64,000 nt of DNA from Dimorphilus gyrociliatus (Eukaryota > Animalia > Annelida): positions 1,178,001-1,242,000 of the forward strand of contig CAJFCJ010000001.1 in the NCBI GenBank assembly GCA_904063045.1. Direction: 5' to 3'. A model generated the notes under the pieces. The model was not told the DNA's origin. It saw only the letters and a list, made by a program, of their open reading frames with translations, and searched no databases. Position 1 is the stretch's first letter. Each line of letters starts with the position of its first letter. Position numbers and translations under genes: made by a program. Shown here piece after piece: positions 20,201 to 47,000 of the stretch.

Positions 20201-22267
20201 GACGTTTTAGAACCTTTTCCCCACCTTCTGGCAATTCCCATATAGTTACCCGACCTTCACAATCCCCTCGAACAACTAGACCAACCTTACGACCTCTAGT
20301 CCAAATGAGATGACGCATTGCAGGTGGACAAAATAAGTTCTATATGAGAATAATAAAATAATAAAACAATAAAAATTATTGTGAGTAGCAAGTCGGAAAA
20401 TTTTGCTTACGCAAGAATATCCCAATTCTAAAACAGTATATGGTTGGGGTCCCGCACTATGCGGACTCTTTGGATCGATCGGCCGACGTCCTTCGTGTAA
20501 ACTGGAAATTCGACAGGTTTTCAAAGCTAAACTATTTTCTTAGGAATTGTAAAGAGAACAGAAGCGAGACCCACCTTCCCAGTGCTTTTCCAAGCAGTAA
20601 GCTAAGACACAATAACACATTAGTGCAAGCACTACCCTACGCCACTAACACAACACACTATCTAAGTTAATCTACTTGCATTTATCTGTTACCACTAGCA
20701 AGTCCTTTCCTATCTACTAAAGCACACCAAAAATAACTCACTTGGCAGGTAATTTGTATAGAAACGCTCGACCTTCAGTGCTCCAGGCAACGACAGCGTC
20801 GACAGATATAAAGTCACCTCCAGCCCACCTTTCGCCTCTTCTTGATGCTTCTGAGCACCGCAAAGAAAAATCGCTGGCATCGTATATCTGATTTGAAAAT
20901 TGTATATCCACTTCATTCAACATAAGTGTTAAATCTCTATACAAATAAATAATAATATAAGACTTGAATTGCTTTTTTATTATTAGATTGTAAAAGTATC
21001 AAATGCAAAACAGAAGAGGGAACGCTAAACCTTCTATTTCGGCCTGTTAGCCTAAGATGTTCTTTTATACATCACTAAAGTTAATATTTAACCAGGCTAG
21101 TCATACACATGCAAAGGAAGCTCACCCCTTCTTCAAACGTAAACCTTGTTGAATATATCTGGTTTTTTGAATGAATTGAAAATTGAATCAAATAGAAAAG
21201 GGTGAGGATATAGGCCAGTTCATATTAATGACTAACACTACACTCTAAAAATAATAAGGAACCTCTCTTATAGGCATATTTACCTGCCAGAATTTCGCAC
21301 AAACTATTAGAACAGTTCTCTGATTATAAGGGCAACAGCGTAATGTATGAGCATTTAAGCATCTAATTTGCTTTGCTTCATTTTCAAATAATTCTTTTTC
21401 CTGTTTCTCTGCATTTGATAAAGTCCAGACTTTAACTGTTCCCGAATTTGATATGGCAACTATTACATCATCTGAAAGAAAATTGATTTTAAGTATATAT
21501 GAATATGCAGTGCATGCATTCATCTTTTATGTAATGTAAACTAGTTACAAATACCTTGACTAGATGCTGGCCGCAAGACAGCAAATGCACTTATCCAATC
21601 TGGAGACATTCTGGACGAGAGTTTGAACAATACCGTCAGAGTCAACGGATCTATAATCTCAATATCAGCATAATTTCCATGGCAAACCAGTCGGGCATCT
21701 CGAGAACCAAGCAATTGATGAGCCTAAAGTAATTAAATACCATATAAGAATTTCATTGATGCAAATTTTTATGGTCAACCTCAATGAAAGTGTGTGTGTG
21801 CTGACTTTTAGATTGTTCTACGGATGTACTGTCATTCATATTCCATAGGCATAGTTCTCTGTAATTGGATAGAGTATTGATGAAAGGGTTAATAAAAACG
21901 ATCTTAACTAACCCGTCATCCGACGCGCTAACAAGTAATGGCTCTTGAAAACTACCTCTACATAAGGCAGTAATTGCAGTTGCATGCCCTAGTAATAGTC
22001 TTTCTGGTTTTATCTGAATAAAATCAATTAAGATGAATAAATTAGACTACTCCCCATTAAGATAAGAAACTATAGATCGACATCTTGCAATTTTTGATTT
22101 AAACAAACCTGCCAGTCATCATCTATTGACCAGATGCAAAGGGACCCATCGTTACATCCTGTGACTAGATTGTCAGGGGTTAAAAGAATACTAGAAATGC
22201 AATGAGTTGGAGCTCGATCTGCCCACAATGTTACTGGAATCACTAAGCTACTGGTGGATATCGACAT
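17262..22267 (-). CDS. WDR7: WD repeat protein 7 (Rabconnectin-3 beta), 8 constitutive exons plus candidate cassette exons
   Basis: VIPVTLWADRAPTHCIS, VCGRENGTIV, LLYPFNENQRYDKRHLVSGGVDFSV, LARRWQHRCLEIREAARALL and AAVDLLGRGFTVWEPY motifs. Confidence 0.93.
20575..20601 (-). other. Candidate 27-nt microexon in WDR7
   Basis: tgtgtcttag|CTTACTGCTTGGAAAAGCACTGGGAAG|gtgggt, phase 2-2 with no stop. Flanking introns are 140 and 73 nt. Confidence 0.55.
21126..21158 (-). other. Candidate 33-nt cassette exon in WDR7
   Basis: aaaaaccag|ATATATTCAACAAGGTTTACGTTTGAAGAAGGG|gtgagc, phase 0-0, with UGCAUG at intron +13. Confidence 0.6.
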
Positions 22268-23132
22268 GATCCTATAAACAAAATTTAGAAAAACATTATT
22301 ATTTCTAGATATGAGTACATTTGATCATCTACGATTAATTCATTACTTACATTTATAATTTTATTGTTGCTCCACACGTATTGTTCGAACTGCGCGAATT
22401 TTCACATAATTGGGGGAGGTCCGCACTTACGGAATAATTATGATGGATAATTTTATAAAAAAGAAACTTTTAAATATTAATAGTGAAATGAGTCGAAAGA
22501 ATCTTACATTATATAACTGTATTATTATCTGCATAATTTTGTTAGAGCGTAACCCAATAATATAATATCAGAATATTTGTTACTATAGAAACCACGTAAA
22601 TAGGAGCAGCATCCGAGAGTCGGTTTTTTAAAAGGTTTTACCGAATACAGATGAAAATAAGAGAAAGAATTATTTATTTTTTCAAATTGGACATTAAGTG
22701 AATAAAAGTTTTTTTTTATATGTACAAGAATTTGATATTAGGGATTTACAAAAAAGAATATATACTATATATATAAAAACCATGTTAATGACAAAAGTAG
22801 ATACTAATTGTTTTATTTTTTTAAATACAAATATACTATATGTACTCCAATTCAAAAAAAATCAGATTACATGAATTCAAGATGAACAATTAATTTCATA
22901 ATTTTATATTGATTAAATAATCAATATATTGATTCGAACCGATTGACTCTGACCAATGGTGAGCCATTCGGTGCAGGGAGGAGAGGGAGGGGGCGGGAGG
23001 AAGATATAACCATAACGAAAAAAAAATGAAAAAAAAATCAGAATGTTAAAAATGTAAATAATTTTATAAAAATTAAAAAAAAAATCTATATATAGATATA
23101 TAAATTTATATATATATGTATATATATTATTG

Positions 23133-26100
23133 TCATTCCACGATATATAAAACAAATTCCATTTCGATGCTTTCGCTTACCACTGAAGCAGCATTGTACA
23201 TTATTTGTACAAGATGCTCGTCCAAACTGGATAATATTGAATCATTTTTTATTAATGATCCGTTACCACCGACTTGAAATCCTACATTTTCAGATGAAAT
23301 ATTCACCCGAACGCCTATTCTTTTAATTTTTTCATCTACAAGCATTTCAGAAAATTTCATCAAAGCCAAAGCTGAACAATGGGCTAGGGCTTCTGCAAGT
23401 TTTGGTAATTCTGAATATTCGCAGGTCTTTCCGATTGGAGTTCCTGCATCGTCGGATTTAAACACATAGACGTTTGTCCATCGAATGGCGAATTTTCCGC
23501 TGGAACTGACTAAATCTTCCAGCTTTTTTATTTGAAGTGATTTTACTCCATCAAGTGCTTTACCATCGACTTCGCTTTCGATTTTTGAGTTTCCTTCGTC
23601 TTGTTCGTGTGACCATGTGACCAAAACTTGATCCTGTATTTAAAAAACTCCTTTAATAAGAACAAACTCACAAAAAGCTAAACAATCTTACCTGTTCAGC
23701 ACAAGACGCTTTAAATGGTCTGGTAGCAACTAAGCTGCTTTTTAACTCTTTAATAGCATCAGCAGTTAATTGAATCATCACTCCGTCTTCCACAATTACG
23801 GATCTTGCTTTGGCAGGACCTTGGGTTTTCAAGCTACCATTGAAAACAACAAAAGTTGCCGCTGTCAATCTTCTAGCTCTCTTCTCAATATTTATGGCTT
23901 GGGTGCTATAAGTTCCTAAATCGACTCCTTCTAGACATTGCATGCACACAAGATGTGAGTCAGCTTCGTTTGAAAAACTAGTTGCCATTGCTACAACATG
24001 TTCTTCACAATCTCTGAGAACTTTCATAACCTGGTTGTAGGACGAAAATGGTAGAATCAACTCGGTCACATGTTCTCGTAGATGTAGCTTAGCTCCAGAT
24101 ATAGTAACTAAAGTATATTGCAAATTGCGAACATCTGCCAATAGTCTTACAATAGAATTTCCCACTTCACCAAATACAGGTGGTCTATCTCTGATGTTGA
24201 CCAATGGGAAAGGATAGTATCTAAATTCAGCCCCTAATCTGAAAAGTAATCTTAAAGGTAACAATTTTGCCCAAACAATCTCCGGCCTCTCAACAAGAAT
24301 TGCGGCCAAATAAGGATGTCTTGGTTCTTTCAATTTACAAAGACACTGTAATGTAGGTTTTACAAATAAGAATCCGGCATGCGATCGAGAATCGAGAAAG
24401 GAAGATGAATTATGTGTCGGAACAACTTGAAGTTCTTCTATATGCTCTCCCGTCAGACTTTTTTCATACAAATGTTCTAAAAATTCGAATATGTCCTTAG
24501 GTGGAAGTTGTTCATTGTCGATCATTTGTATTATGAGTAATACTTCCGGTTGCGCAGCCGATAACATGCCATCAGTTGAAAAAATCCAACACTTTTTACG
24601 CAAGCAGCAGTCTACTACAAAGGACATAAATATCGATTAAAAAAATGTTAAAATTTTAGAATTGAACCTTACGATCAACTAAATCAACTTGAACAATTAA
24701 GTTACTATTAAGTAGGAACTGTAATCCTTCTTCCCCTTTCTCCGAGTACATTCTAGATATTTCCTCTTCATTTAAATCTACACCAACGACAGGTGGTAAA
24801 CAATTCTCTTTAATCAACGATTGACATCTTCCTATTGGTGGAATTCTCATACTAGAATTCGATTTCGAACCGAATAATTTTCTGGGTCCGTTAGAACTTC
24901 TTGCGTGAGGTCTTGGAGGAGGAGTTGCATCTAGATCAGTTAGAGCTCCGCCCGGTTTAATTCCGTCACTAAACATAACCGATTTAGGATTGGACCTCTG
25001 AGAGGTATCTTTACGAATAATTGAATTAGGTGTTGTCGGAGTTGGCGTTAGAAAAGCTTGAGCTCTATTCATATCTTGCATACAAACTGAGCAAACACGA
25101 CAATCACGGTTATTATTTAAAGGCAATTTGGCTCTGAAGCTACAACAGGCTGCAAAAAAATTTTTTGTTAAACTTTTACATCAATTAGAGTAATATCAAT
25201 GTTAGAAATACCTGCACAAAAAACATTACCACAAGCCCTGCAATGGTGACGCCTTTTCGTAAAAGTAAACTTTATTTCACATTGCTTACAGTTTGGCGCG
25301 TCAGCGTCCTTAACCCATTCTGGAGCGATAATGCCTAATTCCGTTAAGGGTATTTCCGTTAATGTTGACGAAGGAATATCTATTTGCGCTTGAGCTCCCT
25401 CAATATTCTCACTTTCTATAACTGGTTCCTCTACGGTTTCCAGCTCAGATGTATTGTCAGTATGGGCTATCGTTGACACTTCTTCATTAGGCACGGAAGT
25501 GACATCCTCTGCAGGTATTTGACTCGAAATTTCTAGTGAAGAGGGTCGAATTGCAGGTAGCCTCTTATCGCCCTCAACAGCAGGAGTTTTCGGAGGTTCA
25601 ATTGGGCCGCAAGATGAAAAACTTAAAAACCTTTCAACACTATCAACGCTTGCATTGCTTTTTGTTTCCTGAATATTCGCCTCAGCTCCAACTTCCTCAT
25701 TGGTGGTTAGACTGATTAATGCATCAATTTTTTGAACAGGTAGAATGCTTGGTCTTTTTGGTTTTTCCATTTGGATTTCATCTGGGGCGAGTATGTCCAA
25801 ATCTAAATTAATAGGAGATGCCTCATCATTCTGATCTTTCTCGATAACTTTCTCTTCAGAATCCATAACAATTGATGGTTTATCGAAGGTTTCGGTTTCC
25901 TCTACTTTTAATAAATTAGGTTGAATGCTATTGAAATCAGGACACTGGAAATCGTCAAATTGATTTGAAGTTACTTCTCTTTTGTTAGTTTGAGTTTGTT
26001 CATTGAAGTTAGTAAAATTGCTATCATTAGTTTCATCGCTATTAAAAGTATATATGAAACTGTAATACTTAAATGTAAACATTTAAAAATGGTGTTTTGC

Positions 26101-26568
26101 TTTTAATAAGTTAAGACGAGACTTTTTAAATAATTGAAATTTGGAATTATTTTATATTATCTATCTTTTAAACGTCGCTTTCATATATACTTTATTTGAG
26201 TATTATTGTCTTTCTCATCGCTCTCCTCTTCAATATGCTTTTTACTTTCAGAAAATGAAGCCGCACTTGGTGGAACTATATCTGGTGGCATTTCAGAAGT
26301 AACAAACTCAGAGTAAAGGGGACCAATTACTCTATCTTCGTCGGGAGTTGCTCTTAATATTTCTGGTTGATTGTTAAGAGCGGCTGCTATGAATGAGTAA
26401 GGAGGCGGTTGAGGACGATTAGGATAAGCTGGTTTTAAAGGAGCCGTCGGTGCTCTAACCACTGAATCTTTAAAAATAATAGTTAAATTACGAAATTTTT
26501 ACCGAAATCTTACCTTCGCTCTCCATATCATCCAAAAGTTGATCTAAATCGACCGTAAAATCATCCAT
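23133..26568 (-). CDS. SARA/endofin-family FYVE protein (ZFYVE9/ZFYVE16-like)
   Basis: N-terminal VDLDQLLDDME, FYVE (WVKDADAPNCKQC...RRHHCRACG...CRVC), KSVMFSDG, and a C-terminal DUF3480-like region ending MEFVLYIVE. Confidence 0.9.
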
Positions 26569-26905
26569 TGTTTAAAAATTCAAGAAATTTGTATAAGATA
26601 TTCAATAAATATTAAGGGAACGATCAAAGGTAATTTCATAGCATTTATTGTCACTTGAGTGAAAGCTTTTTTCAACGATTACTACAGAAAGCAAATGATG
26701 TACCCAAATTTGGCTATTTTTGTTGATGTTTACGTAAACATCAAGAAAGCCGCCATATTTTAACTCGTGATTTCTTTTAAATATTCTCACAATTATGTTA
26801 TAATTATTTCTGATTTTTTTTTATATATAACTATTTGAAAGGTGTATTTTACACGTAAAAAATATTTTTTAAATATATATTTGCTGCGGGATTTCATTAG
26901 GAGTG

Positions 26906-26913
26906 ACTTCCGG
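26906..26913 (-). promoter_or_regulatory. ETS/GABP-type site (CCGGAAGT) between the divergent FYVE gene and UBE2J2
   Basis: Exact CCGGAAGT in the middle of a 586-nt divergent intergenic region. Confidence 0.45.
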
Positions 26914-27154
26914 TCATTCTCATATTTTCGGAATAATATTCGTGAATTACTTTTTTAACCATTCTAGTTTGTCCGTGTGTAGGTATATTATTTTTAAATT
27001 ATTCCTTGTGAATAGAATTTTACTAATAAGAAATTATGGTTGTATACTTTCCAATGTCAGCCAAACTGGTTGATAAGCATATCATAATAAAGCAGGAAAA
27101 AAATGTTTAAATTTTGAATTTTTTCAATAGTCGCCTGAAAAGCTGATCTGCAAA

Positions 27155-28339
27155 ATGACGTCAAAGAGAGTGAATTCGACGGCCACCGCAAGATTGAAGC
27201 AAGATTATATCAGATTGAAGAAAGATCCTGTCCCTTATGTTTCTGCAGAACCTCATGCTTCTAATATACTTGAATGGTATGAAATTGTTCTTAGAGATTT
27301 TATGTTGCTAGAACGTCTCGTTTTTAATTAACTTTGTTTCAAAATAGTCATATATTTATCTATTTACTATTCTTGCGGTTTTTTTCCTTTCGCAATGTTT
27401 AAGCATATGTTGAAATTGTGGAAATGTTGATTTTAGAAAAATATGGTTAAAGTGTACAACTCGTTTATCTTAACAGGCATTATATGGTTAAAGGTCCGGA
27501 AAATTCTCCATACGAAGGTGGATATTATCATGGAAAGTTAATTTTCCCCAGAGAATATCCTTTTAAGCCCCCCAGCATCTACATGATTACTCCCAATGGT
27601 CGTTTTAAATGTAATACCCGATTGTGCTTATCAATTAGTGATTTTCATCCGGATACCTGGAATCCTGCTTGGTCAGTTTCAACCATTTTGACAGGGCTAT
27701 TAAGCTTTATGGTTAGTTGTTTTCGTTTTAATTTTATTTTACATCGCACATATAGAAAGGATTTGATCTCGTAAAAATGTTAAGAAATAATCCAATGTCA
27801 AATTTTGTGTAATCTGAAATCTCTTTTTTAGCTAGAAAATAGTCCAACCTTGGGCAGTATAGAAAAAAGCGATTACGCTGTAAGTATAGTAAATGATAAG
27901 TTCCGCTTTTATTGTTTGAGATAATACTTTCGCTATCTGAAAAATATATATATATTAATAACACGTTTTGCTTTGTTTCTAGAAACGACAATATGCTGCT
28001 CAAAGTGGAGAATTTAATTTAAAGGACAAAACATTTACGGAGCTTTTCCCAGATATAGTTGAAGTACTACTTTAAGTTCAATTAATTCATATTCTATAGG
28101 TTGAATTAATTATTTTTCTATATTTTTTTTTAAAGGAAATTAACCAGGTTCTGAAAAAACGCCAACAGCAACTAGAAGAGAGGACAAAAAAGGATCCAAA
28201 TCGAATGAGTAATATTCAAAGAACAATTGACGATCAAGGCGGTATTATCAATACAGCCCTAACAAACATCGTCGTTATTATTGGATTTGCTGCATTTGCA
28301 CTGACTGTTAAATATGTAGTTAATTCTCTTGTAAATTAA
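27155..28339 (+). CDS. UBE2J2: ER-anchored ubiquitin-conjugating enzyme E2 J2 (Ubc6)
   Basis: [55 protein letters not shown] and a C-terminal TM anchor. Confidence 0.93.
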
Positions 28340-28723
28340 ATGTTTAATCAATAGAATGAAATATTTTGTAAATATTGTAATGTCTAAAAAAAATGGAAAA
28401 AAACTTCAATGTACAATTACTGAAAATCGAGCTTTGATTAAATACAAATTGATTTTTTATATGCTCTCTATATATGAATAGATATATTGTATTAAAATAT
28501 AAGTCTAATACATTAATTACTCGATAATTTACCTCCTCTATTTCTTCTTTAATTTCACATAGATAGCAAAGTAATTAACGCCTTCCATTTCTTTATAGAC
28601 TTATTTGTTAAATAAACAACTTCAAGCCTTTCTCTCTCTCTCTTAGTTATACCGGTTAACACAAATAACAACCGTATTAATATTTGCTTTTCAAACTCTA
28701 ATCAAGTTTTATACAACTGTGAA

Positions 28724-31653
28724 ATGGACGCTTTAAATAATATTTTAAGCGATTTACAATGGGACGAAGGCATCGCAATGCCAGTTTCCAATATTGATAA
28801 TAAACTACTGGAGGATGAAATTCAAAGGAAACAGAAAAAGATAGCCGCATTAAATAGTAAAAAGGAAGAGAATGTCGATAGGATATCAAATCTTCGAGAA
28901 CATATGAAAAATGTGAAACAAGAGTTAAATCATACTCAAAGTTTAGTTAATTTTCAAAGGAAGGCTGTAGAAACAACAGATCATTTGGGAAAGGTAGACA
29001 TTTTTATAGCTAAACCTATAAAATTTTCTTAATTATAAATATTTCAAAAAGAATATTTATCTATCAAATTAAAATTAAAATCGATAAAGTTAGTCATTCT
29101 ATTTACATTTGTATTTTATCCTTTGAAGGTGGCTAATAGAGAAGGTGGACGCATTAAACACGAATTAGCAAGGTTAGGTAAAGACTTGAATGAAGTTAAA
29201 GAAAGATCAAACCGGCTGGAAAATGAAGTATTTCAACGTACAAAGAAACTTGACGATGTCAAAGAATCAGTCAATGTTGATGAAAAGGCTCTGGAAGAAT
29301 GGTTGGAAGAGTCGTCGAAAAGAGATGAGGATGCTATGGCTCTTTTAAAATACAATATTAAGGATGAGGGAAGGATTAAAACTATGAACCTTCAACTTGA
29401 ACGGCTATGCGATATAGCAAAGAAGAAGAAGGAAGAATTGGAAAAAGAGACAACTGAAACCCTTACAACTCAAATTGAACTTGATAAAACTGCTGAGGAG
29501 TTTAGGAAAATTCATTTAGAAAGACAAGATCTTTTATTTCAATGGGAGAAAATAATTAAACAAATGCAAGTAAAAGATGATGAAATAACCCAAATGGCTG
29601 TAAAATTAACACTAGCAAAGCAGGATATACGAACAATAGATGAAGAGATAGCAGAAAAAGAACAATTTTTAAAGGCAGAATCCGATAATAATGATGAAAT
29701 TAGAAAGCAAACAATAGAGAATGAAAGAATTCTTGGAAAATTAAAAATTCAATATCAAGAGGAAGAGTTGGTAAGGGATCAATTCAATTCTGAGCTAGAA
29801 GCTTTACAAAGAACATGCGAAAGAACAGCTTTAGATCTTGAATCTATGAGATGTCAAGTTACTCAACTTAAAAAGGAATCTAATGAGAAGAGTAATCAAT
29901 TACGAGATATACAAGAAAAGAAGAAAGATCTCGTAGAAAAGTTTAAAGTAATTTCTTTTATTTATTATAACCATAGCTTCGTATAATAGACGAAGATCTT
30001 ACATATTCTCTTTAATTTTGTTATTTATGTCTTCCCTATCTTCAGGTGGCTAATGAAATTTCACTAAGTGCTGAAGAAAGAGCTCAAGAAATGGATAAGC
30101 TACTCATAATGGAAGAAAAATTACAGACTAGATTGAGTATTGAATTGGATCGTTTAAGGGAACAAAACTTTCGCAATACTGAAATTTATACCAAGTTGAA
30201 GTCCGAAAAGAAGAATATCGAATCCGAAATTCAAGGAATTTACACCACTATACGTCATTTGAATACAAAGTTAACAAAATTAGATACAGAAGGTTTAAAG
30301 CAACAGGAAATATTGTACAACCAAGACTTCACTATTCAACAATTAGAGAGGAGAATGGGACGAATGCATGGTGAAACTTCAAATGAGGACAAACTAAGAA
30401 TGGAAGAAAAGATAAAAGTTCTATTAGAGGAGCTAAAAGAAAAAGAGAATAAAAAGTCAATTATGATACAGCAACTTAAAAGATCACAGGATGATGTAAG
30501 AAGAATAAAGAGAAATTCCGAAAAGGCTAAATCGGAAATGGATCATTTAGTTTCGAAAATCGAAGAAGTTGATTTACACGCTGAAACGGCTGAGCGAGAA
30601 TTAAAAAAAACAATCAACAAGAAACAAGATTTAATGGTTGAAGAAAACGTTCTGAAAGTTGAACTTAAAAAAGTCCGGAACATTCTAGGAGACAAGGCGG
30701 ATGACGTTGTTAGTTTAAAGAAACGGAAATTACAGCTGGATATTGCTTTAAAAGAGAGATCTCGGGAAATTTCTTTATATAAGGATATGATGATAAATGA
30801 GATGAGATTGGTGGAGGACGAAAGACAGAATGTGAGTTCAGAGCTACACGAGCGAGTAGCTAAAATTGATAAACTGAAAAAAAGATACGAATTACTCATG
30901 GTTACAATGGGTTCACCCGAAGGCGAAGAGGAGCAATCTCAAGCTTTCTACGTAATTAAATCAGCACAGGAAAAAGAAGAGTTACAAAAAGATGGAGATG
31001 AATTGGATGCCAAGATAAGAAAGGCGGAAAAAGAAATGGGCGCTTTAGAAAATACACTAAGAGTTATCAATTCCAGGAATGAAATATATAGAAAAAGCTT
31101 TAACAAAGTTCAAGAAACTTCAGATGAAATGGAAGAAAAACAAGAACTGGAAGAACAGTACAGGGCTGCTCAAGATAAATTCAAATATAAAAAGAGATTA
31201 ATAAGAGAATTAACTCATGATTTAAAATTAATGGGAAATACAATAGAAGAACTGTCGATTGAAGGAAATCACCTTTCAGAAATGTATGAACAGAATAAGA
31301 AGAAAATGTCGCAGCTGAATAAAGAAATATATAATCAAAATGAATCTTTGGATAGAGTCCAACGACAAACTCGAAACTTGAATAAAGTGCTGAAAAAAGG
31401 AGCGAAACGCTCTACAGAAGAAACAGATATTGAACTAAGAGGTGCAAGAGAATTTAATAAAAGTGTTATGAGAGAAATTAACGAAGTTATCACACAATTT
31501 CCGAATATGTCTAATTCTGCACATGCATATTTCCTAAGCGCTAATCTCCCTCCGCCTTCAATGACCTCAACTCCAGCATCATCTGTTAGAGGATCAGTCC
31601 ACTCTTCCGGATCAACGTCCAGTAGTAGATCATCATTAAGTCTACGTTTATGA
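28724..31653 (+). CDS. CCDC39: Coiled-coil domain protein 39 (axonemal 96-nm ruler), 3 exons
   Basis: LSDLQWDEGIAMPVSNIDNKLLE, QIELDKTAEEFRKIH and ELDAKIRKAEKEMGALENTL motifs. Confidence 0.92.
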
Positions 31654-31969
31654 GAATCCTCATAATAACTTAAATTATCCAAAAATTGTTTAAACAACTT
31701 AGATTATCTTATCTAAACAAACAAAATCCATTCTAAATATTATATTGAACGAAAAAAAATGTTAGCTTTATTAAAATAATTTTTTACATAAATTATTCTA
31801 TGTTTTGATATTTGAGAAATAAGAAATAAATTCTATTTTATTCCTAAATGACCTCTATAATTTATAGTATAATAAAATAATAAAAAGTTGAATTTAGTGA
31901 CATCGCTAAAACTTTTTCATTTGCAATCGACAACTGATATCAGAACTTAGCAACACCCAGTTCAAAAAA

Positions 31970-33284: not shown

Positions 33285-33541
33285 ATAAAAATTTGATGCT
33301 TGATTTTTTTTAAATTGAAATAAAAAAGTTTTTGAGTAATCATGTGCTATTGGCCTATAAATAATAATATATGACCTGATCGAGGAAATATTCTTTTCTT
33401 TTCCCCATATTGAACACGTGTTGAGCTTTCATAAATTTGATCATTGACTTAATTGTTTAAATCAAACTAATTAACTACACGTAATGAGTTTCATTCAACA
33501 CAATCGAACATCTTATCTGTATTGAAACAACACGGCATTCT

Positions 33542-34296: not shown

Positions 34297-34350
34297 GATG
34301 TTAATTTAAGTTTTTTGACAGCCAAGAAACACGAGGTTCAATGGCGGACC

Positions 34351-34364
34351 GGAAAAAGAAAGAA
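34351..34364 (-). promoter_or_regulatory. TCT initiator / 5'TOP tract of RPL15
   Basis: TTCTTTCTTTTTCC about 55 nt upstream of the ATG, with an upstream CAGGAAGT (ETS) and a downstream CCGCCATT (YY1-like), typical of ribosomal protein promoters. Confidence 0.7.
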
Positions 34365-34533
34365 CGTTGCCACTTCCTGTCCGCAGTTACGGATTAAACT
34401 TCTAAATAATTTTTTAAAAATGAGGAATAGCATATAATTTTTGTAAATTTTTTAGAGAAAAATTTTTTTGGAAATTATTAAACATTATTTAATAAAGGTC
34501 AAGGTTAAACTTATCTCAGTGAGAGAAACTGAT

Positions 34534-36063: not shown

Positions 36064-36531
36064 CTTTAACAAAATTGCATGTATATATCTTTGTCCATAT
36101 TAACAAGTAGATTGATACTATACAAATTTTACATCTTTATTTTATGTGTATGGAATTTGCAGTGTTTTTCTAAACAAAAAAGTCTATTGTGAAATTGACT
36201 TCGCTTAAAATTGAAACAGAACCTGCTTAGTTTCAGTTAAGAGTTGATATTGATCACTTGAGGGAAGGGGAAAGACAACTTAGGAATATCTTATATTTCA
36301 TTACATATTAATATTTAAATCACTTGCTTTTTACTAACAAAGATAGTAAATTCTAGGTTGTTGATTAATAATTACTCTAAAATAACACTATTTTCTATTA
36401 TAATTTAAATAAAAAATGTTTTAACGTTAGCTTTGATTTCAATTGATAAACACACGCTAACATTGATTTGTAATTAAGAAAATTACTGTTTTATTTTTGC
36501 CAATAAATAACATTCCTAACAAATTGAGATT

Positions 36532-38509
36532 TTATTCTGGTCCAAGAACCATCTGACCAGGGCCACCTCTCTTCATGTAACGACGATAGATTTTATATTT
36601 GTTACTTTCTGCAAGTTTCTGTTTTTCTTCTTCTTCTTTATTCTCTTTCCATTCCTAGAATATTTTTTATTTATTTCAAAAAAAATTCCTTTGTCGTTAT
36701 TAAAGTTTAATATTTCACCTGAAATTTTTCATCAATCCATAGTTCCATTCTATAGAAATCCTCTCTGTCATATTCTTCTAAAGCCTAATGATATTATATA
36801 TTATATTATAGACAGTAAAACTTAGTCAAACGATGATTTTAATTCTTAATTTATAAGTACATACATTCCATTTTCCTTCGGACAATTTCATATTTCTTCT
36901 AATAAGATATTCATGTTCCTCTCTTGTATATGGATTTCCACAGATATTGAACTTCCATATCCATCTTATATACCAAACGATGTACTGGAATGTATACCAA
37001 GGTAAAAGCGCCAATTGAAACCATAAAACATCTTTGATCGATGGTTTACTATAACTTCCTCTGAAAAATACGTGTGCTTAAATTGAATAGTCTAACGATC
37101 TGCTGTTATTACAAACTAGCCAAATCAATTTATATAGGTTTACGCACGTTGCTTTATTATAGTTTATTATCTAGTAAAATGTAATATATACTATAAAAAA
37201 TTATATGCCGTATGAAATTGCTACCGCTATTTAAAATTATACAATTATCTATTTTAAAATAAATAGCTACAGTATACAAATATAATATAAAGTTATATTT
37301 GCTTATAAACAAGTATTTAGCTCTTTTCAACTTTATTTGTATTATTCTAGAAAAAGTTCTAAAAACTCTCTTATATCAAAGAAATTGTGTAAATTTCTAG
37401 ATATTTACCTTATATCCATTTTTTCTGCAACGACTTTTCGTAGTACATTCTCTTCTTGTTCTCTTAATTCTTCTTTTGAAATTCCTCTCTGTTTTTTCTT
37501 ATTTGTCTCTAACATACCCTCTCTTTTTGCTATTTCCATTGCTTTTATCTTATATTTAGGATCTCTTGCAAAGTAATTTATGGCAGCATTATAATTATTC
37601 CATGAACTCCAATACTGTATCACAGATATGATTGTTATTGCAACGGCTATGACCAGTCGAACATCCACTTTAGGTGCTACACGAGTTCTGTAATATCTAT
37701 AGTAATGGTGGTAGTATTCATCTATAACAAAACAAACGATTTAGTTAAAAGGTCAAATGTGCCTGTTGTTCTGATGTACCTGGATTATCAAGCATATAAT
37801 CGTAATCTTTTCGCGATTCTTCATCTCGCAAAACCTAATGTAAAAATTTTCAATGACTTTACGATACTCGCACTTTCAATAAAGTGTTTTAATGATTTTG
37901 AAGTATGCAATGTGTTAAATATTGAAGAATCGACTGTTTGAACTTACTTCATAGGCCGTAGCAATTTTTCTGAACATTTCTTCAGCTAATACTTGCTTAT
38001 CTTGACTCTAAATTTGTAATATTATTTTACAAACAGTATAAAAAAGCATAAATATATATTTTAACAAACTTTTTTCCTATGCTTATCTGGATGCCATGTT
38101 TTAGCTAGTTTTCTATAGTTCCTACTGATTTCTTTCTGCATGATTGTCGAAAAACAAAAATATATGTTTGATTAGTTTTTAATAAATCTTAATTTAAATA
38201 ACAAGATATTACCGTATCTGAATCTCGCGTGACGCCCAAAACTAAAAAAAAGATAAAGTTGAGTTAAGACGTGGAAAAATGAACAAAGCGAATAAAAAGA
38301 TTCACTCGAAAATGAGACTATTTATTAAATAATTACATGTACATTTTATATATAAAACACACTCTTTACATAAAAATCTTACCATCGTAGCAATTGTCTC
38401 TTCCACAGTACAACCCCTCAATAAAACAAGTTACTTGTGGAAAGAAACTTAAAATTAAGAGAATTTGAATCAGCTTGTATAGGCCCATAGTAGTATCGTA
38501 GCTTCGCAT
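36532..38509 (-). CDS. DNAJC25: DnaJ homolog subfamily C member 25, multi-exon
   Basis: FIEGLYCGRDNCYDVLG, J-domain WHPD, YYRYYRTRVAPKVDVR and the C-terminal RGGPGQM. Confidence 0.92.
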
Positions 38510-38962
38510 ACGAGAATTGAAGCTTAATGATAGACTTACTCTTCTCAGCCACTAGAAAATCGATATCACAAAGAAATATCTTAAACAAACTGAAACACGT
38601 GGAAAAATATGTTCTGTTTTGTATAAGCTGTTTCATTACATAAATTTCAAAGCTATTATAATTTTTTTAGAATCTTTTCAATACTAAAACTGCAATTGTT
38701 CATTTATTCATGATAAGTAAAAATGAACATTTGCAAAATGTATATATACATATATATATAATACTAATAATTCTTCTACAGTTCTTTTTCAATAGAATAT
38801 TAATTATATTCCCAAATCTATTATTATTTGTGAAAAAAAGTGTTAAGAGAAGGAGAAAGTGTAAAAGAGAAAGAAGAACTACATAGTATAGTCAACTACT
38901 ATCACAGACGTTTTGTATACTTCAACTTAAAGAACAAGCAAGTACAGTATAGAAATTTGTGT

Positions 38963-39971
38963 TTAGTATTCTGCAGACCTTCGAACAGCTTTTAAAGCTT
39001 CTAACTTCCTATCAAACTCTTCCGGTGGAAAGCCGATAAATTTACTACGATATTCTGTGTCCCAGGCTGATGTTTGACGAGCTAAACGAGCCTTTTGGAG
39101 TTGAGATTCACGACAGAAGATATTGCGTCTGTCATTAAACAACGCTTTTTGACGTCTTTCCCAAAGTGGAATATCCTTTTCTTGTTGTTCATTATCGTGT
39201 ATAACTGCCTGACGTCTCTTTTGAGCCCTCAGAGCACTATCATAAATCTAGAAGCATCAATCGGTATTTATAATACAACATATTGGTTGTATTTAAAATA
39301 TATATGGAAACCCTTACTTGATCTGATGCTAGAACGTTGTAAGTTTTCTTTCTTCCTGTTTCGAGTTCACTATCTTTGTAGCCATATGCAATGAAAGGTT
39401 TAGATTGGATTTTAGGTTTAGTCGATAGCGATTTTGTTGGAGCTGAAGAAGGTTTTGGTACATACTTCGGAACTTTCTTAAATTTATAACCGATCTTCTT
39501 TTTGCTTTTCTCAGAAATGGCTCCTTCACTACCGTTTGTTAGAGTGCTTTTCAATGAGAGAAATAGGTTTAAATCAATTTTTAAACTTAATTATTCTCAT
39601 TTATATATTTACCGATTGCTGGTTTGAATTTCTTTCTCTTCGTATCTAGTCTTGGCATTCGAATTGGTATTTGTTGCTCTTTCAATAGATTTTAGGTTTA
39701 CTTTCAGTTCATCCTTTTGCTTTTTTTTAAACTTTTCTACCAACTTTTCATGTCTGAAAATGTGTACAGGAGCTGTACTCGGTCTTGGCGTCATTGAAGG
39801 GGTTTCATCTTCATCTTCCGATGATTGCCAATGAAACACATCTGAATTATGCGAGCTCTCCTTAAGACGACGACATATGCGATAATCTGACAAACTGACG
39901 TAGGTCTCAGGCTGAAGCCTGGGACGAAAAGCCCGCCTATATTCGGTTTTACTGGGAGAATGTTGTACCAT
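38963..39971 (-). CDS. CCSAP: Centriole, cilia and spindle-associated protein-like, 3 exons
   Basis: KTEYRRAF..YRICRRL, PFIAYGY...GRKKTYNVLAS-IYDSALRAQKRRQ and AWDTEYRSKF match the CCSAP blocks. Confidence 0.75.
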
Positions 39972-40117
39972 TCTCAGTATTAACAAGTTTCGACCTGTAT
40001 ACCAGTTTTTCGGTTACCCCACACACGAAATATTCTTAGTCACAAACTCGGTGCATTCGTATTGTAGTTTATTCGAATGAAGCAATACTAAACAACTGAT
40101 TGATCAAAAGAGACGTA

Positions 40118-40793
40118 ATGAACGTTTTGGACTGCCCAATTAATTCTGTAAGCGAATTTCCTCTAATTTTGTATTGAAAATGATAAAGTGATTATTTTTA
40201 TAGGCACACCAACAAGAACGAAAAGCTGATTCCCTCATAAACTATAAAAAATACGAAAGAGCTATTGAATGCTTAGACAAAGCGATTTGTTAGTAATACT
40301 CTTATGATTCAACATAAATGATTTTTCTCTTCGGGATCTCTTTTCAGATTTTATAGATCAAGCATCAGCTAGAACGAAAGTAAGAGACGTCCTAACTTCT
40401 TTAAAACTCCAAAAAGAATCCCTGCAAAGAAGGAAAAGAACTGTTCTTCAATTAGATGAAGAGAGCAGACGATCCTCTTCGCCGTGTTCAAGCACTGGAA
40501 GTGATCAGACAGATGACGTAAGCGAAGATGTGTTGCAAACCTTGTACGATTGTGACACACTATTAGCTGAGTTAGTACAAAGGCAAGGCTGTACTGTTCC
40601 ACCAATAAGACCCCTACCCAATGGAATGAATACCTCTAAAGTATTGGAAGAGTTACATATGCATAATGCTGCCCTACAAAAACATGTCCGAATGCTATTA
40701 GATGAAAGTGGTGAGAAGGATCGACAACTGAAACATTACAAACTCTTGAATCAACAACTTGAACAGAAACTGCATCAAATGGATTTAAAATAA
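40118..40793 (+). CDS. NRBF2: Nuclear receptor-binding factor 2 (PI3KC3-C1 subunit), 3 exons
   Basis: MIT-like N-terminus PINSAHQQERKADSL..YERAIEC, SLKLQKES, and a C-terminal coiled coil (LEELHMHNAALQKHV). Confidence 0.82.
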
Positions 40794-41212
40794 GCCAATT
40801 TGCACTTGATAAATTAAGAATGATCTATATATTTCGGTGCTTTACACTCACTATTAAAGATTATTTTAAAAAGGTTGATCGCAGATCTACTCAAACTTTT
40901 ATTCCAGCACATTTTTGTGATTTACTTATGTATTAAGTAGTTTTTTTAAGATTAGCGTCAAAATCAATCTATTGTACGTTCAAACCGTATACGAGTAATT
41001 TTTTGTTTATGCAATCGATGCTTTATAAATTAATAAATCTTTTTTCGCTATCAGGATTCCCAAATGTATTAATAAGAAAACTAATAACTTTCAAATAGAT
41101 GAACATTTCAGTTATACCTTATAAACCCGATAAACAAAACGGCGTTATTGCCCTATATTAGATATGACAAAATATTTACGACACTTTTTCAAGCATGTGT
41201 CTATTTTCAAGC

Positions 41213-42918
41213 CTAGTTTCCGTATTTTTTAAAGCATGAAATGACATCTTCAACGTCCTCCTTCGATCCAAGGAATATTGGGCTTCTTTGATGGATTGTT
41301 TCCGGCTGAATATCCAAAATATTACCAGTTCCGGTGGTTGCTAAGCCTCCTGCTTGTTCCATAATGAATGCCATTGGGTTGCATTCGTACAAAAGACGAA
41401 GTTTTCCATTTGGAGTTTCAGTTGTTGCAGGGTACGCAAAGATACCGCCGTAGCATAAAGTTCTGTGGACATCAGCAACCATAGAGCCAATGTACCTAGC
41501 TCCGTAGGGCTTGCCGCTCTGACAGTAAAATTAATATTAATTAGAGAATACTTTAAACTTTTTCATTTAACTTACAGCTGGTTTTTTCTTGCTATCAATG
41601 TACTTTTTTACTGGTTCTTGCCAAAGAGCAGAATATCCTTCATTAAGGGAGTAAATTTTTCCTTTTGGCTTAATACGAATATTTCTTTCGGTCAAAATAA
41701 ATTCTCCGATAGACTGAAAGTACACAAATTAAAACTATTTAATAATCAACATGAACATTTATATCGTACCGGATCCAACATAAAACCATTGACACCATTT
41801 CCGACACTTAATACTAACATGGTAGCACTACCATATAAGCAATAGCCCGATGCAATGATTTGTCTACCTGGCTGTAAAGCATCTTTAATATTAGCCGCTC
41901 CATCGCTAATCTATAAAAGAGAATATTTATATAAAAATTCAATATATGTTTATGTTGATAATTTAAACAACTCACCTTCTTGTAGATGGCAAAAATAGTT
42001 CCAATAGAAACCAGACAGTCAATGTTAGAAGATCCATCGAGTGGGTCAAAACAAACAACGTACTTTCCCTAAAATTTACAAAATTTATCATTAACAGTTT
42101 AATTTTATATAGATTAGTCAATAGAACACAGGCTAGAGGCATTCATGAAAAATAAAGGTTGTGGATATTACTAATTACACGAGACGTTAGCAAGAAAAGT
42201 TGTAACGACTTTAATCACACTCTTTATATGACAACATGTACTTACCACCGGTCCCTATAAGGACAAAGATAAAGCATATTAAAAAGAGCATCACGTGATC
42301 GGTCGACAGTGTTTATTGGTTTAGATAGTAAATTCTTTGTTTCCAGGTTAAATAGAGTATAATTACTTGTATTCATTAGCCAATTAACTATGAAACTTAT
42401 ATTTACCTGTTTATCTGATTCAACCTCAATAACTTTTTCGTTCTCCTCACTGACCATAAGACATGTAGTGTAACTAGATCTCAGCATGTTGATGAATAGG
42501 TCATTGGAAAGGACATCCAATTTCTTTACATCTTCTCCTTGAACATTCGTAGAACCAGCCATACCATATCTGAAAACGGGTGCAATAATTAAAAATTTTT
42601 GCAAATAAAGTCGAATATGACCGGCTTGGCTTATGCATTGCTTTCAGAATTGCAGAACTGTGCATTACAACATCTTCGATCTCACAAAGATATTATTATT
42701 ATGCACTTAAAGTTATGCATTGGAAGCTAATATTATTCTTACAATTTGGCAATTCCGGCTTTTCTTACAGCTGTTGAAATGGCTTTGCAAGCCGTACATA
42801 TTGCTGTCATTAATTGCGTTAAATCTCCAGTAGCATGAGGATGTTTTCTTTGTTCCGCTAGTAAATAACGGGTCAAAGTCATACAGTCAGTATCAATACC
42901 AGAAGAAGTTCCTGCCAT
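41213..42918 (-). CDS. FBP1: Fructose-1,6-bisphosphatase class 1, multi-exon
   Basis: [57 protein letters not shown] and [14 protein letters not shown]. Confidence 0.96.
42246..42254 (-). other. Candidate 9-nt microexon (Gly-Pro-Val) in FBPase
   Basis: atgctttatctttgtccttatag|GGACCGGTG|gtaagt, phase 0-0. Flanking introns are 152 and 177 nt. Confidence 0.7.
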
Positions 42919-44009
42919 TTTTAGTGTGTTCTCTTCAGCGGCTGACGTAGAGGTGAACTAAGCAAAAAAAGTAGAGGACGTTGACGGTCAAGGTCGTTTA
43001 ATGCCAATCGATCTCGTGATCGTTTTCAAAAAGTTCAACAATAAGATAGCAGCACGACTTCTTGCTTTTATCACATTAAAGCTTATTTTACGTATAATAA
43101 AAAAAGGCTATATAAACTAAACTCATTTTAAGTATAAAGTCAATAAATAGCTTACAAATGAAAAAAGACCTTTTGAGCTCTGGGCAAAATTTAAATGATG
43201 GTTATATCTTTGACTCTCTTTGTACATACCATCATTAGTTGTTTATGGAAGTATTGATGGATAATTAATATTTTTAAAGCTTCAAATTAGCAGATGGTAT
43301 ATTTTACCAGTATAAAATGGGATAAAATTTGTTATATATTAATAAATGCTGTGAATTCGACTTTTTGATAAAGATCATATAACAGATAGGGTCTATTGAT
43401 TTGCATTATGTCAAAAATGTAGAAGTTTATATTACCAATAAGTGTTGAATATCTTACAAGGTAATGTATAGAGGTGCATTGACATTAGAAAAAGTCAATT
43501 TCTTAATCCAAAAATATGTGTTTTCAGTATAAAGGCATTATACTTAGTGATTTATAAACATTACAACTTTGTAAATGAATACATTAGCTTTATTAAATCA
43601 TATTCCAGTTGTAAAAATATTTACTCTATTTCAAAACCTGATTCCAAACTTTTTCATTCAGACCAAACAGGTTTAGCTAATATATAAAATTCAAATTGTA
43701 AAACGTATATGATAAAAGTGAATTTAAGTAAAATCTATAATTTGTCGCTTGATATTATGAATAATTAAATTATTGACTACTGCTTGATAATGAATTGGTA
43801 AATACTCATATGTTTTTTTTTACGAAAACAACTTTAGTTGGTGTTTATCACGCCGTAGCAGCAATCTTGAACATTCCAATATTTTCCGACTTGTAAATAC
43901 AACTTCTATTTCAAATTAATTATTGACTCATTTTAAGGATATATTAAACACTCAGGAATTATTAGATAATTGGATAAAATGCAATAAATAAACTTATCAT
44001 ACTCGCGGA

Positions 44010-47000
44010 ATGCCGAAAACTGAGGAGAAAACTAAACGTGAGCTATGGTATTTAATTTTGGCCGTTTAATCCCTTTATGTGTTGTATTATAGAGAGAAAA
44101 AATTGGAATAAGTCTGATTTGCACATAAGTCTACCATCGACAGGCGAAAATGATCTAGAGGTAAATTATAGATAAATTAAGATTGTTAGAGAAATACGAA
44201 TTGTTGTAGTTTATATCTATAATTATGTCATCGCAGATTATACGATTAACTTTTTTATTTCTGTTAACAATAAATATAAGTCCAAATATAAATAATAGCA
44301 AAGCAATCATTCTTTAAAAAAGTTTTAAATTTCGAATAAATGATAATTGATTTCGTATTTTCTGTTTTATAGGCGAGACAAGATGTTGATCCTAACTATG
44401 AAGGATATTTGCTGGCATTGCAAGATAAGAACAGGTTATAAAACATACTACTATTTAAGTTAGAAGATGATGTAGTAAAATTTGCATTCAGAGTTCTCAA
44501 GACCCTTAGAGAAAAGGATGAAGATCAAAAAGAATTAGAGAGAAAAGAGCAAGGATTTACTCTCTATCTAAATGGCGCAAACGCACAGAGGAGGCGATCA
44601 TCGCCGTCTAGAAGAACCGTTATTAATCCAGGTAGACATGATTAGTATTTTCTAAGTAAACTTTAAGTTATTTGAAATTCTCTACAGCGTATGTTCGTTA
44701 TCCCCGTAAGTTAACTATTAGAGATAATTTACAACCTAACTAGTATTGGTGATCAGATTTAGTCAATGATAATTTATCTATTCCAGTTTCTCTTTATGAT
44801 TATAATCCAATAATTCTCTCTCCTATTAGATCTTTATTAAAGTTATATAGTATTCAATACAATGTACTGTTCCTATTCAATTATTCATTTATACTTTATA
44901 GATGCAATAGACTCAAAAGAAATTAAAACAAAGCCAACAATTCACAAAACAAAGAGACGTAGATGGAATGCTGCTTCTTTCAACATTCAAACTCAACGAG
45001 GAGAAAAAGTCAATGTTAAAGGACCTGGTCTGTTTTAATATTAGCGTAATATTTAAATATATTAATTGTTTGCATAAACTAATAGAAGCTCAATATGAAG
45101 ACGATTTTGATACCTGTTCAGAGGACGAAGAGAATCAAATGAGCTTGAAAATGAGTGTTAAAGACGTTAAGGTTTTCAATTATTTATATTTAAACAAAAC
45201 ATATAAATTGATCGAATCAGCTGATTATTGTATAATTTAGGAGGTACATAGAAAAAATATAAAAATATTTATATAAATAAACGTGATATAACCAAGTTAG
45301 TTCCTTCTGCCTCCCCCTTCCATTAATCATGCTATTTACTATTAAATTCCATTCAATTGAAACCAATTGTTTAAAAGCAAATTTACTACTCATTATTTAC
45401 AATGAATAATATTTAACTATTTAACAATAAACACTTTTTTATAAATAGAAACTTAGAAGAAGCCTGGAAATGAATAAGAGTATAAGGGATAGTTTAGCTC
45501 TACATTATATTGAATCGGATTCTGATGAGATTCCTGAGGAAATTCCTGAAGAGAATGATGAAATATGTCGCGAAGATAGTAGGTCAAAGTCTAGAGAAAA
45601 TGAAAAAGATATATTTGTATTAGAATTTGATAAACCTAAGAGCAGTAAGCTACTCTACTATTTAGTTTTATATTTATCGAGCTTTTAATGTCAACTTTAT
45701 ATTTTATAGAAAAAGTCTCCCTAAAAAAAACTGAGTTAGAACCTAAACACTCTGTTCAAAAGAGTAGACTAGGTAAAGTAAAAGGTGGAAAATCATTAGA
45801 AGGTACTTCGGAGTCAAAAGTCAATGCATCGTCAGTTTTTCGAGCTATGCAGGAAGAGAATAAAAAATTTGAAAGTTCCCGAATAAAAAATCTCACTAAA
45901 TCAAACGACGAGAGCAGAGATCATAAGCTAGGGGACAGAGAAGAAAAGCGTAGAATGAGCAATGAGACTGACTATCATACAATTATTGAAAGGGTTTTAG
46001 AAATGGATCCCTTTAAACAAAAGAAGTTATTACAAGCTTTAGAAGAGATTGAATCAGGGTTCAAGACTCCCGCTGTGCAATCTAGTTTTGATTCTTTTTC
46101 TAAATGTATCAAATTAAAAATTTTATCGAATTGGGGAGATTTTAGAGTTGGGTTAACCGAAATTGAATTGTTAAAGGAAAATGAGAAAATCCCTATTGAT
46201 AGTATTAGTGTGTTAAAGGCAAGAACTGAAAATGGAAATATCAGTAATCTAATCAACGGAAGGTTCAGAACAGTTAAAGAAAAGCACATGTGGAGTTGTT
46301 TGATGAGTGACGATGAAGAAAAATATCCTGTAATTGAGATAGAATGTAATGAAATACCAGACAAAATGAAAATATGGAATTATAACAAATCGCTGGCCGA
46401 AATATCGACAGGCGTCAAAGAAATTTTAGTGTCCTATGATGAACAAATTTTATTTCAAGGAATTATAGAAAAAGGATGTGGCAATCAAGTATTCGACTAT
46501 GGTCAAACAATTATCCTCAGTAACCCATCGTCTACACCGACTGTTGATAGAGTTAGTATGTTTGAGGCAGAGGATGATGAACATCCTAGGTGTGAAACAA
46601 GAGTTTTGGAGAAAGTTCCAAGGCAAGATATTCCTGTAATTGATAACGAATCAACAAGAATCAGGGGGAAGAAGAAAAAGAGTGTTGCTGCTCTTATTAA
46701 AGCTCGAAAATCAAAAATGAATAATGACGATTCCAAAATGGATATTGTTAAAAACGAGGATGAAAAAAAAATCGAAGAACCGAAGGAAAAAATTGATTCT
46801 ATATTATCAGCAAGGTAAAAGTTGCATTATTGGTATTTGTCCAGCTAGGGTGATCTTGCTTAACTATTAAATTTTTTGCAAATAGCTTAGAATCTCTTGG
46901 CTGTGTTTTTTTAGTTCTTAGAAATTTTGTTGAATTTAGTTTTACAGTGCATGATCACCCGGATAGAAAGCTCTTCAATCAATAATTTGTCATTTTCTAT

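Follow-up and report, generated by a model that had tools for sequence, protein, structure and literature searches.

Long introns of the annelid Dimorphilus gyrociliatus, in WDR7 (two introns), FBPase (one) and KATNIP (one), very probably each hold a genuine cassette microexon (33, 27, 9 and 18 nt, respectively). In a related species, all four retain both length and splice sites, and the substitutions follow patterns expected under coding or regulatory constraint. They lie in a stretch of 64,000 nt, the window of this analysis, in a genome whose median intron measures 66 bp (PMC7854359). The data support an enrichment of the long introns studied here for real, conserved tiny exons, and intron length is a useful yet imperfect pointer to such exons, working in about half of the cases.

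Intron Lengths and Candidate Exons

In WDR7, FBPase and KATNIP, 22 introns are supported, and they fall into two classes, 14 of them measuring 54–95 nt and 8 measuring 173–396 nt; the original prediction, made from the sequence of this region, had placed most introns at ~50–75 nt and a few at two to six times that length. The census of long intervals was restricted to genes supported by RNA or comparative evidence, since censuses of the full window proved noisy: a home-made dynamic-programming gene finder, which grossly over-predicted (495 introns in the window), and an ORF-chaining census, which was too noisy, were both dropped. Ten intervals were covered, in four genes picked by the reader who made the original prediction (WDR7, FBPase, KATNIP and DNAJC25); five contain an exon of at most 33 nt, a rate of one in two that is not a genome-wide estimate, one further interval adjoins a 54-nt skipped exon, and the remaining four hold no exon at all, in keeping with the earlier caution that the rule is not absolute.

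Five candidates (the four exons named above and a 3-nt GAG in KATNIP) are at most 51 nt long, a multiple of three and free of stop codons; each is preceded by AG and followed by GT, preserves the reading frame and is the top scorer of its own intron under a splice-site position weight matrix (PWM). Conservation was assessed by alignment to genomic contigs of the relative (L001 and L002), to which coding exons are 79–88% and short introns 45–63% identical, and RNA evidence comes from whole-animal or environmental contigs (runs X1, X2 and X3) aligned at FBPase and KATNIP. RNA and/or conservation support four of the five candidates, the exception being the 3-nt GAG, the only one whose exon and splice sites are not kept in the relative. 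The earlier claim that long introns contain frame-preserving exons of 3–33 nt with valid splice sites therefore stands for the exons of 33, 27, 9 and 18 nt and is unsupported for the 3-nt one.

When the eight long introns were compared with 1000 dinucleotide shuffles of themselves, three introns held a candidate of at least 13 bits, that is, with splice sites as strong as those of ordinary introns, as against 0.13 in the shuffles; with the threshold lowered to 8 bits, the count was five, and the shuffles gave 1.8 (P = 0.014). Across these introns, shuffles yield ~2.3 candidates of at least 8 bits and 0.9 of at least 10 bits. The summed scores of the WDR7 exons are in this region, 10.5 bits for the 33-nt and 8.2 bits for the 27-nt exon, so that both of these weak-site exons stand on conservation and not on splice-site score.

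Two Conserved Exons in WDR7

Intron 5 of WDR7 (20888..21283, minus strand; 396 nt), as delimited by sequence and ortholog alignment, harbours the 33-nt exon (21126..21158, minus strand), which encodes IYSTRFTFEEG and separates sub-introns of 125 and 238 nt. Within an otherwise poorly alignable intron, this exon forms an island in which 31 of 33 nucleotides (94%) are identical in contig L001 of the relative, the two changes being synonymous (TCA>TCT) and R>K (AGG>AAG). The WDR7 proteins of molluscs, brachiopods and nemerteans carry inserts beginning [IVL]Y at the same protein position. The acceptor scores 2.8 and the donor 7.7 bits. Downstream of the exon, a UGCAUG hexamer (21108..21113, minus strand) is found at +13, and in the relative at +12, and ~100 nt downstream lies a pyrimidine-rich block (…CCCUCUUCUGUUUUGCAU…; 21001..21027, minus strand), identical to the relative at 25 of 27 positions and possibly a PTB/Rbfox-type element.

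Intron 6 (20502..20741, minus strand; 240 nt) harbours the 27-nt exon (20575..20601, minus strand), which adds LLLGKALGS and leaves sub-introns of 140 and 73 nt. All 27 nucleotides are identical in the relative, and the conservation extends into the intronic flanks (20520..20646, minus strand), including GUGCUUGCAC (20623-20632): the 45 nt upstream are 98% and the 55 nt downstream 95% identical, vs. 79–88% for the coding exons of WDR7. Flanks that are more conserved than coding sequence fit retained splicing-control sequence. Two UGC trinucleotides stand upstream, their positions (−30 and −26) being unchanged in the relative, and the acceptor is very weak (0.4 bits) next to a donor of 7.8 bits. 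A hairpin considered at this exon was rejected, its folding energy being no better than that of shuffles (z = +1.5).

Both WDR7 exons match optional inserts at equal protein positions in other protostome phyla. Inserts homologous to that of the 27-nt exon, of the form L(L)KGKA[LV], are found in the WDR7 of Owenia, Tubulanus, Lingula, gastropods and bivalves, and in Hymenoptera KLKGKALS is present in some isoforms and missing from others within one species (Nasonia P0069 vs. P0061), with a phase that, as judged from the protein junction, is that of the 27-nt exon. Since position, motif and phase are shared with optional exons elsewhere, the alternative use of this exon is probably very old, on the order of hundreds of millions of years; our literature search found no paper describing it. 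In D. gyrociliatus itself we infer that both exons are included, and skipping is read from the isoforms of other species; a search with the protein words of WDR7 exon 6 for transcript fragments over either microexon returned one unrelated genomic fragment only.

A 9-nt Exon in FBPase

Intron 2 of FBPase (42069..42406, minus strand; 338 nt) is defined by RNA joints in X2 and X3 that skip exactly this stretch. It harbours the 9-nt exon GGACCGGTG (42246..42254, minus strand), which encodes Gly-Pro-Val and lies between sub-introns of 152 and 177 nt. An X1 contig carries ACCGGTC between 42069 and 42406; completed by two letters shared at the ends, this gives the exon in reverse complement, and the exon is thus included in one RNA contig and skipped in two. 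In the relative, the corresponding sequence reads TTTATAG/GGACCAACG/GTAAGTAC, with length and both splice sites kept, although the exon itself is identical at only six of nine positions (CCG>CCA is synonymous). Its splice sites are strong, with a PWM sum of 17.8 bits. Two UGC upstream of the exon are missing in the relative.

The exon that follows begins at G111-K112-Y113 of mammalian FBPase, and K112 and Y113 are known to bind the inhibitor AMP. The placement of Gly-Pro-Val directly before them suggests that a metabolic switch may be under splicing control, through which the exon could change allosteric inhibition.

Further Exons in KATNIP and DNAJC25

An RNA joint in X3 skips the 270 nt of the KATNIP intron (44632..44901, plus strand) that harbours the 18-nt cassette exon (44688..44705, plus strand), placed by conservation between sub-introns of 56 and 196 nt and adding AYVRYP. 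The relative keeps its AG, its 18-nt length and its GTAAGTT, in an intron that is only 43–52% identical around it, and four of the five differences within the exon are synonymous third-position changes, the fifth being V>L. The PWM sum is 14.3 bits. The X3 contigs contain the skipped form only, inclusion not being seen in them.

The 3-nt GAG (45241..45243, plus strand), in the KATNIP intron of 277 nt at 45172-45448, has a good splice-site score (13.1 bits), but the relative lacks AG/NNN/GT at the aligned place. The X3 joint leaves the letters in between undefined, so that the contigs are silent on its use, and the GAG is most likely a chance match. Farther along the gene, a 54-nt cassette exon (47025..47078, plus strand) lies just downstream of the 210-nt intron at 46815-47024: one X3 contig joins 46814 to 47025 and another joins 46814 to 47161 onward with one mismatch, skipping the exon, and both forms are in frame. 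The 210-nt intron itself contains a conserved inverted repeat, but the search for a conserved unit bounded by AG and GT gave none.

The long intron of DNAJC25 had been given as one without a tiny exon. Its interval of 247 nt (38136-38382) does contain one, of 29 nt (38213..38241, minus strand; VLGVTRDSDT, the start of the J domain). Its CAG/…/GTAAGT borders are preserved in the relative, where most changes are synonymous. As it is required for the reading frame, this exon is constitutive.

Intron Length and the Proposed Control of Inclusion

We favour the view that each of the four microexons would divide one long intron into two sub-introns, its inclusion being set by nearby intronic elements that would differ from exon to exon. 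The 33-nt exon of WDR7 may be controlled by the conserved UGCAUG and the pyrimidine-rich block downstream of it, and the 27-nt exon by its weak 3′ splice site within near-invariant flanks carrying two UGC, and at the FBPase exon and the 18-nt KATNIP exon the splice sites are strong and neither UGC nor UGCAUG is conserved. The surplus length of the introns would then be due partly to control elements and partly to other causes.

The strongest competing explanation, a serious contender that we nonetheless rank below an even chance, is that the long introns are long mainly through transcriptional control elements and that the tiny exons are incidental. Open chromatin is tied to large introns in D. 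gyrociliatus, where 944 intronic ATAC-seq peaks lie in introns substantially larger than others (PMC7854359). Intron 2 of FBPase is 66–68% identical to the relative throughout its length, vs. 45–52% for most other FBPase introns. Motifs within it include a CCAAT box that is conserved (42311-42321) and an E-box, the palindrome ATCACGTGAT (42290-42299). The four long introns devoid of any exon also speak for this explanation. However, the most conserved intronic sequence, that around the 27-nt WDR7 exon, adjoins the splice sites of the exon directly, and the main island of conservation in WDR7 intron 5 takes in the exon together with the UGCAUG and the sequence immediately flanking the exon. The proposal that length was kept for splicing-control elements is upheld in part, by the long sub-introns and by the 95–98% identity of the flanks of the 27-nt exon, with open chromatin as a second cause of length. 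Transcriptional and splicing elements are compatible explanations of the same introns.

The original prediction attributed the exons to one neural programme acting through an eMIC-containing SRRM protein, with intron length kept to house its control elements, a view that we consider doubtful. A gene for an eMIC-type regulator is present: a Pfam profile search of the genome gave an SRRM_C (PF15230) match scoring 29 bits, above the cut-off of 27 (G000:C13:1373574-1373720). WDR7, or Rbcn-3B, is a synaptic-vesicle V-ATPase partner. Targets of eMIC are described as pairing a weak acceptor with a strong donor and a nearby UGC (PMC8797185), and the 27-nt WDR7 exon combines all three; the searched part of the supplements of that fly study makes no mention of Rbcn-3B. 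A UGC within 40 nt upstream occurs at two of the four exons (WDR7 27-nt and FBPase), close to the chance of ~0.3 per exon of finding at least one, and is conserved at the former only; none is present upstream of the 33-nt WDR7 exon or the 18-nt KATNIP exon. The 33-nt exon, the only one with a conserved UGCAUG within ~100 nt downstream, instead looks Rbfox-type, the 18-nt exon has neither motif, and FBPase, as a metabolic enzyme, is an atypical neural target. Moreover, eMIC-dependent exons of Drosophila are flanked by short introns (PMC8797185), in contrast to the long ones found here. Conserved motifs are thus a UGCAUG at one exon, UGCs at another and none at two. Three exons do carry UGC or UGCAUG, as had been reported, with the reservation that the UGCs of FBPase are not conserved, and a single neural programme is unsupported. 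A profile search of the genome for Fox-1_C (PF12414) gave 0 matches, as did the search controls.

A purely geometric link is unlikely. Any cassette exon requires two introns of at least ~45 nt, so that its host must reach at least twice the median, and an apparent long intron could be nothing but two ordinary ~60-nt introns and an uncounted exon. Three of the ten sub-introns around tiny exons are indeed of ordinary size (56, 73 and 77 nt), but the other seven, at 125–238 nt, exceed the median of 66 nt two- to fourfold, and the surplus length is therefore not merely that of two ordinary introns and an overlooked exon. Lastly, AG-(3n)-GT matches arising by chance, in long introns devoid of functional exons, are a highly improbable account of the candidates, in spite of the yield of shuffled introns and the unconserved GAG. 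This account is refuted for four of the five by the RNA inclusion of the FBPase exon, by the conservation in the relative of four exons and of the splice sites that bound them, and by the homologous inserts in other phyla; it stands for the 3-nt GAG only.

Relation to Known Microexons and Implications

Microexons are already known as a kind, and the exons described here are additional members. Like the alternative microexons of bilaterians (3–51 nt; vertebrates, amphioxus and Drosophila), those of D. gyrociliatus are short (9–33 nt) and frame-preserving, with canonical splice sites and conserved flanks; both inclusion and skipping are seen in FBPase, and two exons combine a weak 3′ with a strong 5′ site. 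They differ in their annelid host with its 66-nt median introns and in that one of them sits in a metabolic enzyme, beside AMP-site residues. The likeness to the eMIC/SRRM3-4 neural programme (Torres-Mendez et al., Sci Adv 2022, PMC8797185) extends to the SRRM_C gene and to the UGC near the weak 3′ site of the 27-nt WDR7 exon; the three other exons differ from it in having no conserved UGC. The 33-nt WDR7 exon, with a conserved UGCAUG and a conserved pyrimidine-rich block downstream, resembles the RBFOX/PTBP1-regulated micro-exons of Li et al. (Genome Res 2015, PMC4317164).

In the compact genomes of the nematode and the fly, regulated alternative exons sit between longer, conserved introns. 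The same relation is found here, with the difference that it serves to predict tiny exons missing from annotation; in a small, hand-picked sample, about one prediction in two held.

Exons of 9–33 nt are easily missed in annotation, and sequence combined with one related genome offers a cheap improvement of gene models in compact genomes. Tentatively, length outliers and a single related genome could be enough to find the majority of regulated microexons in this compact genome even without deep RNA sequencing, in a set that would include ancient, protostome-wide ones, such as the ‘LKGKAL’ exon that WDR7 shares with insects, and ones in metabolic enzymes, such as the Gly-Pro-Val exon of FBPase, which could act as a splicing switch of allosteric inhibition.

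Conserved Microexons within Long Introns

Four real and conserved microexons are present in the window, one of which is alternative in RNA. The DNA is that of an animal, AT-rich and with closely packed genes, and the published genome of Dimorphilus gyrociliatus (PMC7854359) measures 73.8 Mb, its median intron being 66 bp. The original prediction had placed five microexons in the long introns of this stretch; four of them are upheld by RNA and/or by conservation in a related species, whereas a 3-nt GAG in KATNIP is unsupported.

The five candidates, located from sequence, were scored (acceptor plus donor, in bits) with a splice-site model derived from 31 supported introns, the candidate sites themselves being left out. 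Under this model, real introns have a median of 13.1 bits, the FBPase 9-nt exon (42246–42254, minus strand) reaches 17.8, the KATNIP 18-nt exon (44688–44705, plus strand) 14.3, the KATNIP GAG (45241–45243, plus strand) 13.1, the WDR7 33-nt exon (21126–21158, minus strand) 10.5 and the WDR7 27-nt exon (20575–20601, minus strand) 8.2, each being the best scorer in its own intron. Introns with a candidate of at least 13 bits number three, against 0.13 in 1000 shuffles of the eight long introns, and those with a candidate of at least 8 bits number five, against 1.8 (P = 0.014); the equal frequency in shuffled sequence that would have counted against the original prediction is not observed. The two weak-site WDR7 exons would fail if judged by splice scores only.

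The related species is represented by a 10-kb genomic contig reached via the large WDR7 exon (protein 92% identical) and by a syntenic 17.8-kb contig reached via a KATNIP exon and also bearing FBPase and DNAJC25; baseline identity is 79–88% in coding exons and 45–63% in short introns. Database searches were run with single exons, and joined spliced models were used only in local scripts. RNA contigs came from two environmental runs (a coral and a marine metatranscriptome) and from a run of the organism itself; rare splice forms are dropped in such contigs. The comparison covered 41150–47100, a stretch spanning the FBPase and both KATNIP candidates.

An Alternative 9-nt Exon in FBPase

In a contig of the coral metatranscriptome, the letters ACCGGTC stand where the FBPase exons meet, between 42069 and 42406. 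Together with two shared end letters, these are the exact reverse complement of GGACCGGTG, the 9-nt exon, which is therefore included. Contigs from the organism and from the marine metatranscriptome, the latter originating from a relative 90–95% identical to the window, join the same exons directly, and the 9-nt exon is hence alternative. In the related species it reads GGACCAACG, with its length and both splice sites retained. The insert directly precedes G111-K112-Y113; K112 and Y113 bind AMP according to established structural work on FBPase, so that allosteric inhibition may be altered by the insert.

FBPase intron 2 contains a conserved CCAAT box and palindromic E-box ATCACGTGAT (42290–42321, minus strand), some 40–70 nt upstream of the 9-nt exon, and is over its whole length better conserved than the neighbouring introns, pointing to an enhancer or a promoter-like module inside the intron. 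As a separate observation, the occurrence of FBPase transcripts in the coral (>99% identical to the genome) and marine metatranscriptomes indicates that D. gyrociliatus or close kin were present in the coral-associated and marine samples.

KATNIP Exons and Intronic Elements

The KATNIP 18-nt exon retains its AG, its length and its GTAAGTT in the related species, and synonymous changes at third positions account for four of the five differences, for which the estimated probability under random changes is ~0.016; the insert would fall in a less conserved N-terminal region of the protein. The GAG lacks a counterpart in the related species. Contigs from the organism show the 270-nt intron around the 18-nt exon and the 277-nt intron around the GAG each excised whole, with the letters at the joints unresolved, so that a 3-nt exon would not show. 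Within the otherwise diverged 277-nt intron, a 20-nt block, ATAAATAAACGTGATATAAC (45273–45292, plus strand), is conserved without flanking splice sites.

A further KATNIP exon of 54 nt (47025–47078, plus strand) is both included and, in one contig, skipped among contigs from the organism, the frame being kept either way, and contains a UGCAUG kept in the related species. The 210-nt intron preceding this exon carries an inverted repeat conserved in both species, GGGTGATC…GATCACCC (46848–46864 and 46945–46963, plus strand), with arms ~80 nt apart; a UGCAUG beside it is not conserved in the related species. The repeat may pair as an RNA stem, thereby shortening the intron or regulating the 54-nt exon.

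Intron Length and the Question of a Common Programme

Intron length is a useful, imperfect flag for microexons. In a small sample of ten long intervals picked for the original prediction, an exon of at most 33 nt lies in five, namely the four conserved microexons and a 29-nt DNAJC25 exon (38213–38241, minus strand) within what resembles a single 247-nt intron. The reading frame depends on this exon, which codes for the beginning of the J domain (VLGVTRDSDT) and is conserved in the related species with mostly synonymous changes. A sixth interval, the KATNIP 210-nt intron, lies directly ahead of the skipped 54-nt exon. FBPase intron 1 (173 nt) and the KATNIP 212-nt and 277-nt introns hold no conserved exon-like unit relative to the related species, to which DNAJC25's other long intron, of 330 nt, does not align at all. 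Seven of the ten sub-introns flanking the tiny exons still measure 125–238 nt, so the length effect is more than geometry.

These flanks differ from those of fly eMIC exons, which are short (PMC8797185), and open chromatin has been given as another reason for long introns (PMC7854359). A single eMIC-driven neural programme is not demonstrated by these data: an SRRM_C (eMIC) match is present in the genome (domain search, 77.9-Mb assembly), yet candidate control motifs are not alike from exon to exon.

Conservation and Age of the WDR7 Exons

The WDR7 33-nt exon is a conserved island (31/33 identical to the related species, with one synonymous change and one R>K) inside a poorly alignable intron, followed by UGCAUG, whose position is +13 here and +12 in the related species. 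The 27-nt exon shows no difference, and its flanks are 98% (45 nt upstream) and 95% (55 nt downstream) identical, exceeding the coding level; the fold of a hairpin predicted there is nothing special. Just upstream of the WDR7 start codon, a 71-nt block (22343–22413) is 66/71 identical, above coding exons, and probably represents 5′ UTR sequence or a promoter element.

Both inserts would lie in the protein's N-terminal region. N-termini from 23 species or isoforms were aligned, and 120 protein matches were then scanned for patterns. At the 33-nt site (KYWQ^IYDA), 14 lophotrochozoan sequences have inserts, mostly beginning [IVL]Y. L(L)KGKA[LV] occurs at the 27-nt site (YKLPxN^) in annelid, nemertean, brachiopod and mollusc sequences, and KLKGKALS occurs there in Hymenoptera. 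The junction residues in Nasonia agree with an intron of the same phase, and its isoforms include some that have the insert and some that lack it. Hymenopteran proteins (P0051, P0062, P0066, P0069, P0070 and P0061 from Nasonia; P0100 and P0098 from Apis cerana) take three forms at this site, without insert, with KLKGKALS, and with VITQLES plus KLKGKALS, which suggests two neighbouring microexons in combinatorial use. A literature search found no paper describing either the 33-nt or the 27-nt exon. Judged by inserts at matching sites in other taxa, both WDR7 exons appear to be old alternative exons, and the 27-nt exon probably dates to early protostomes.
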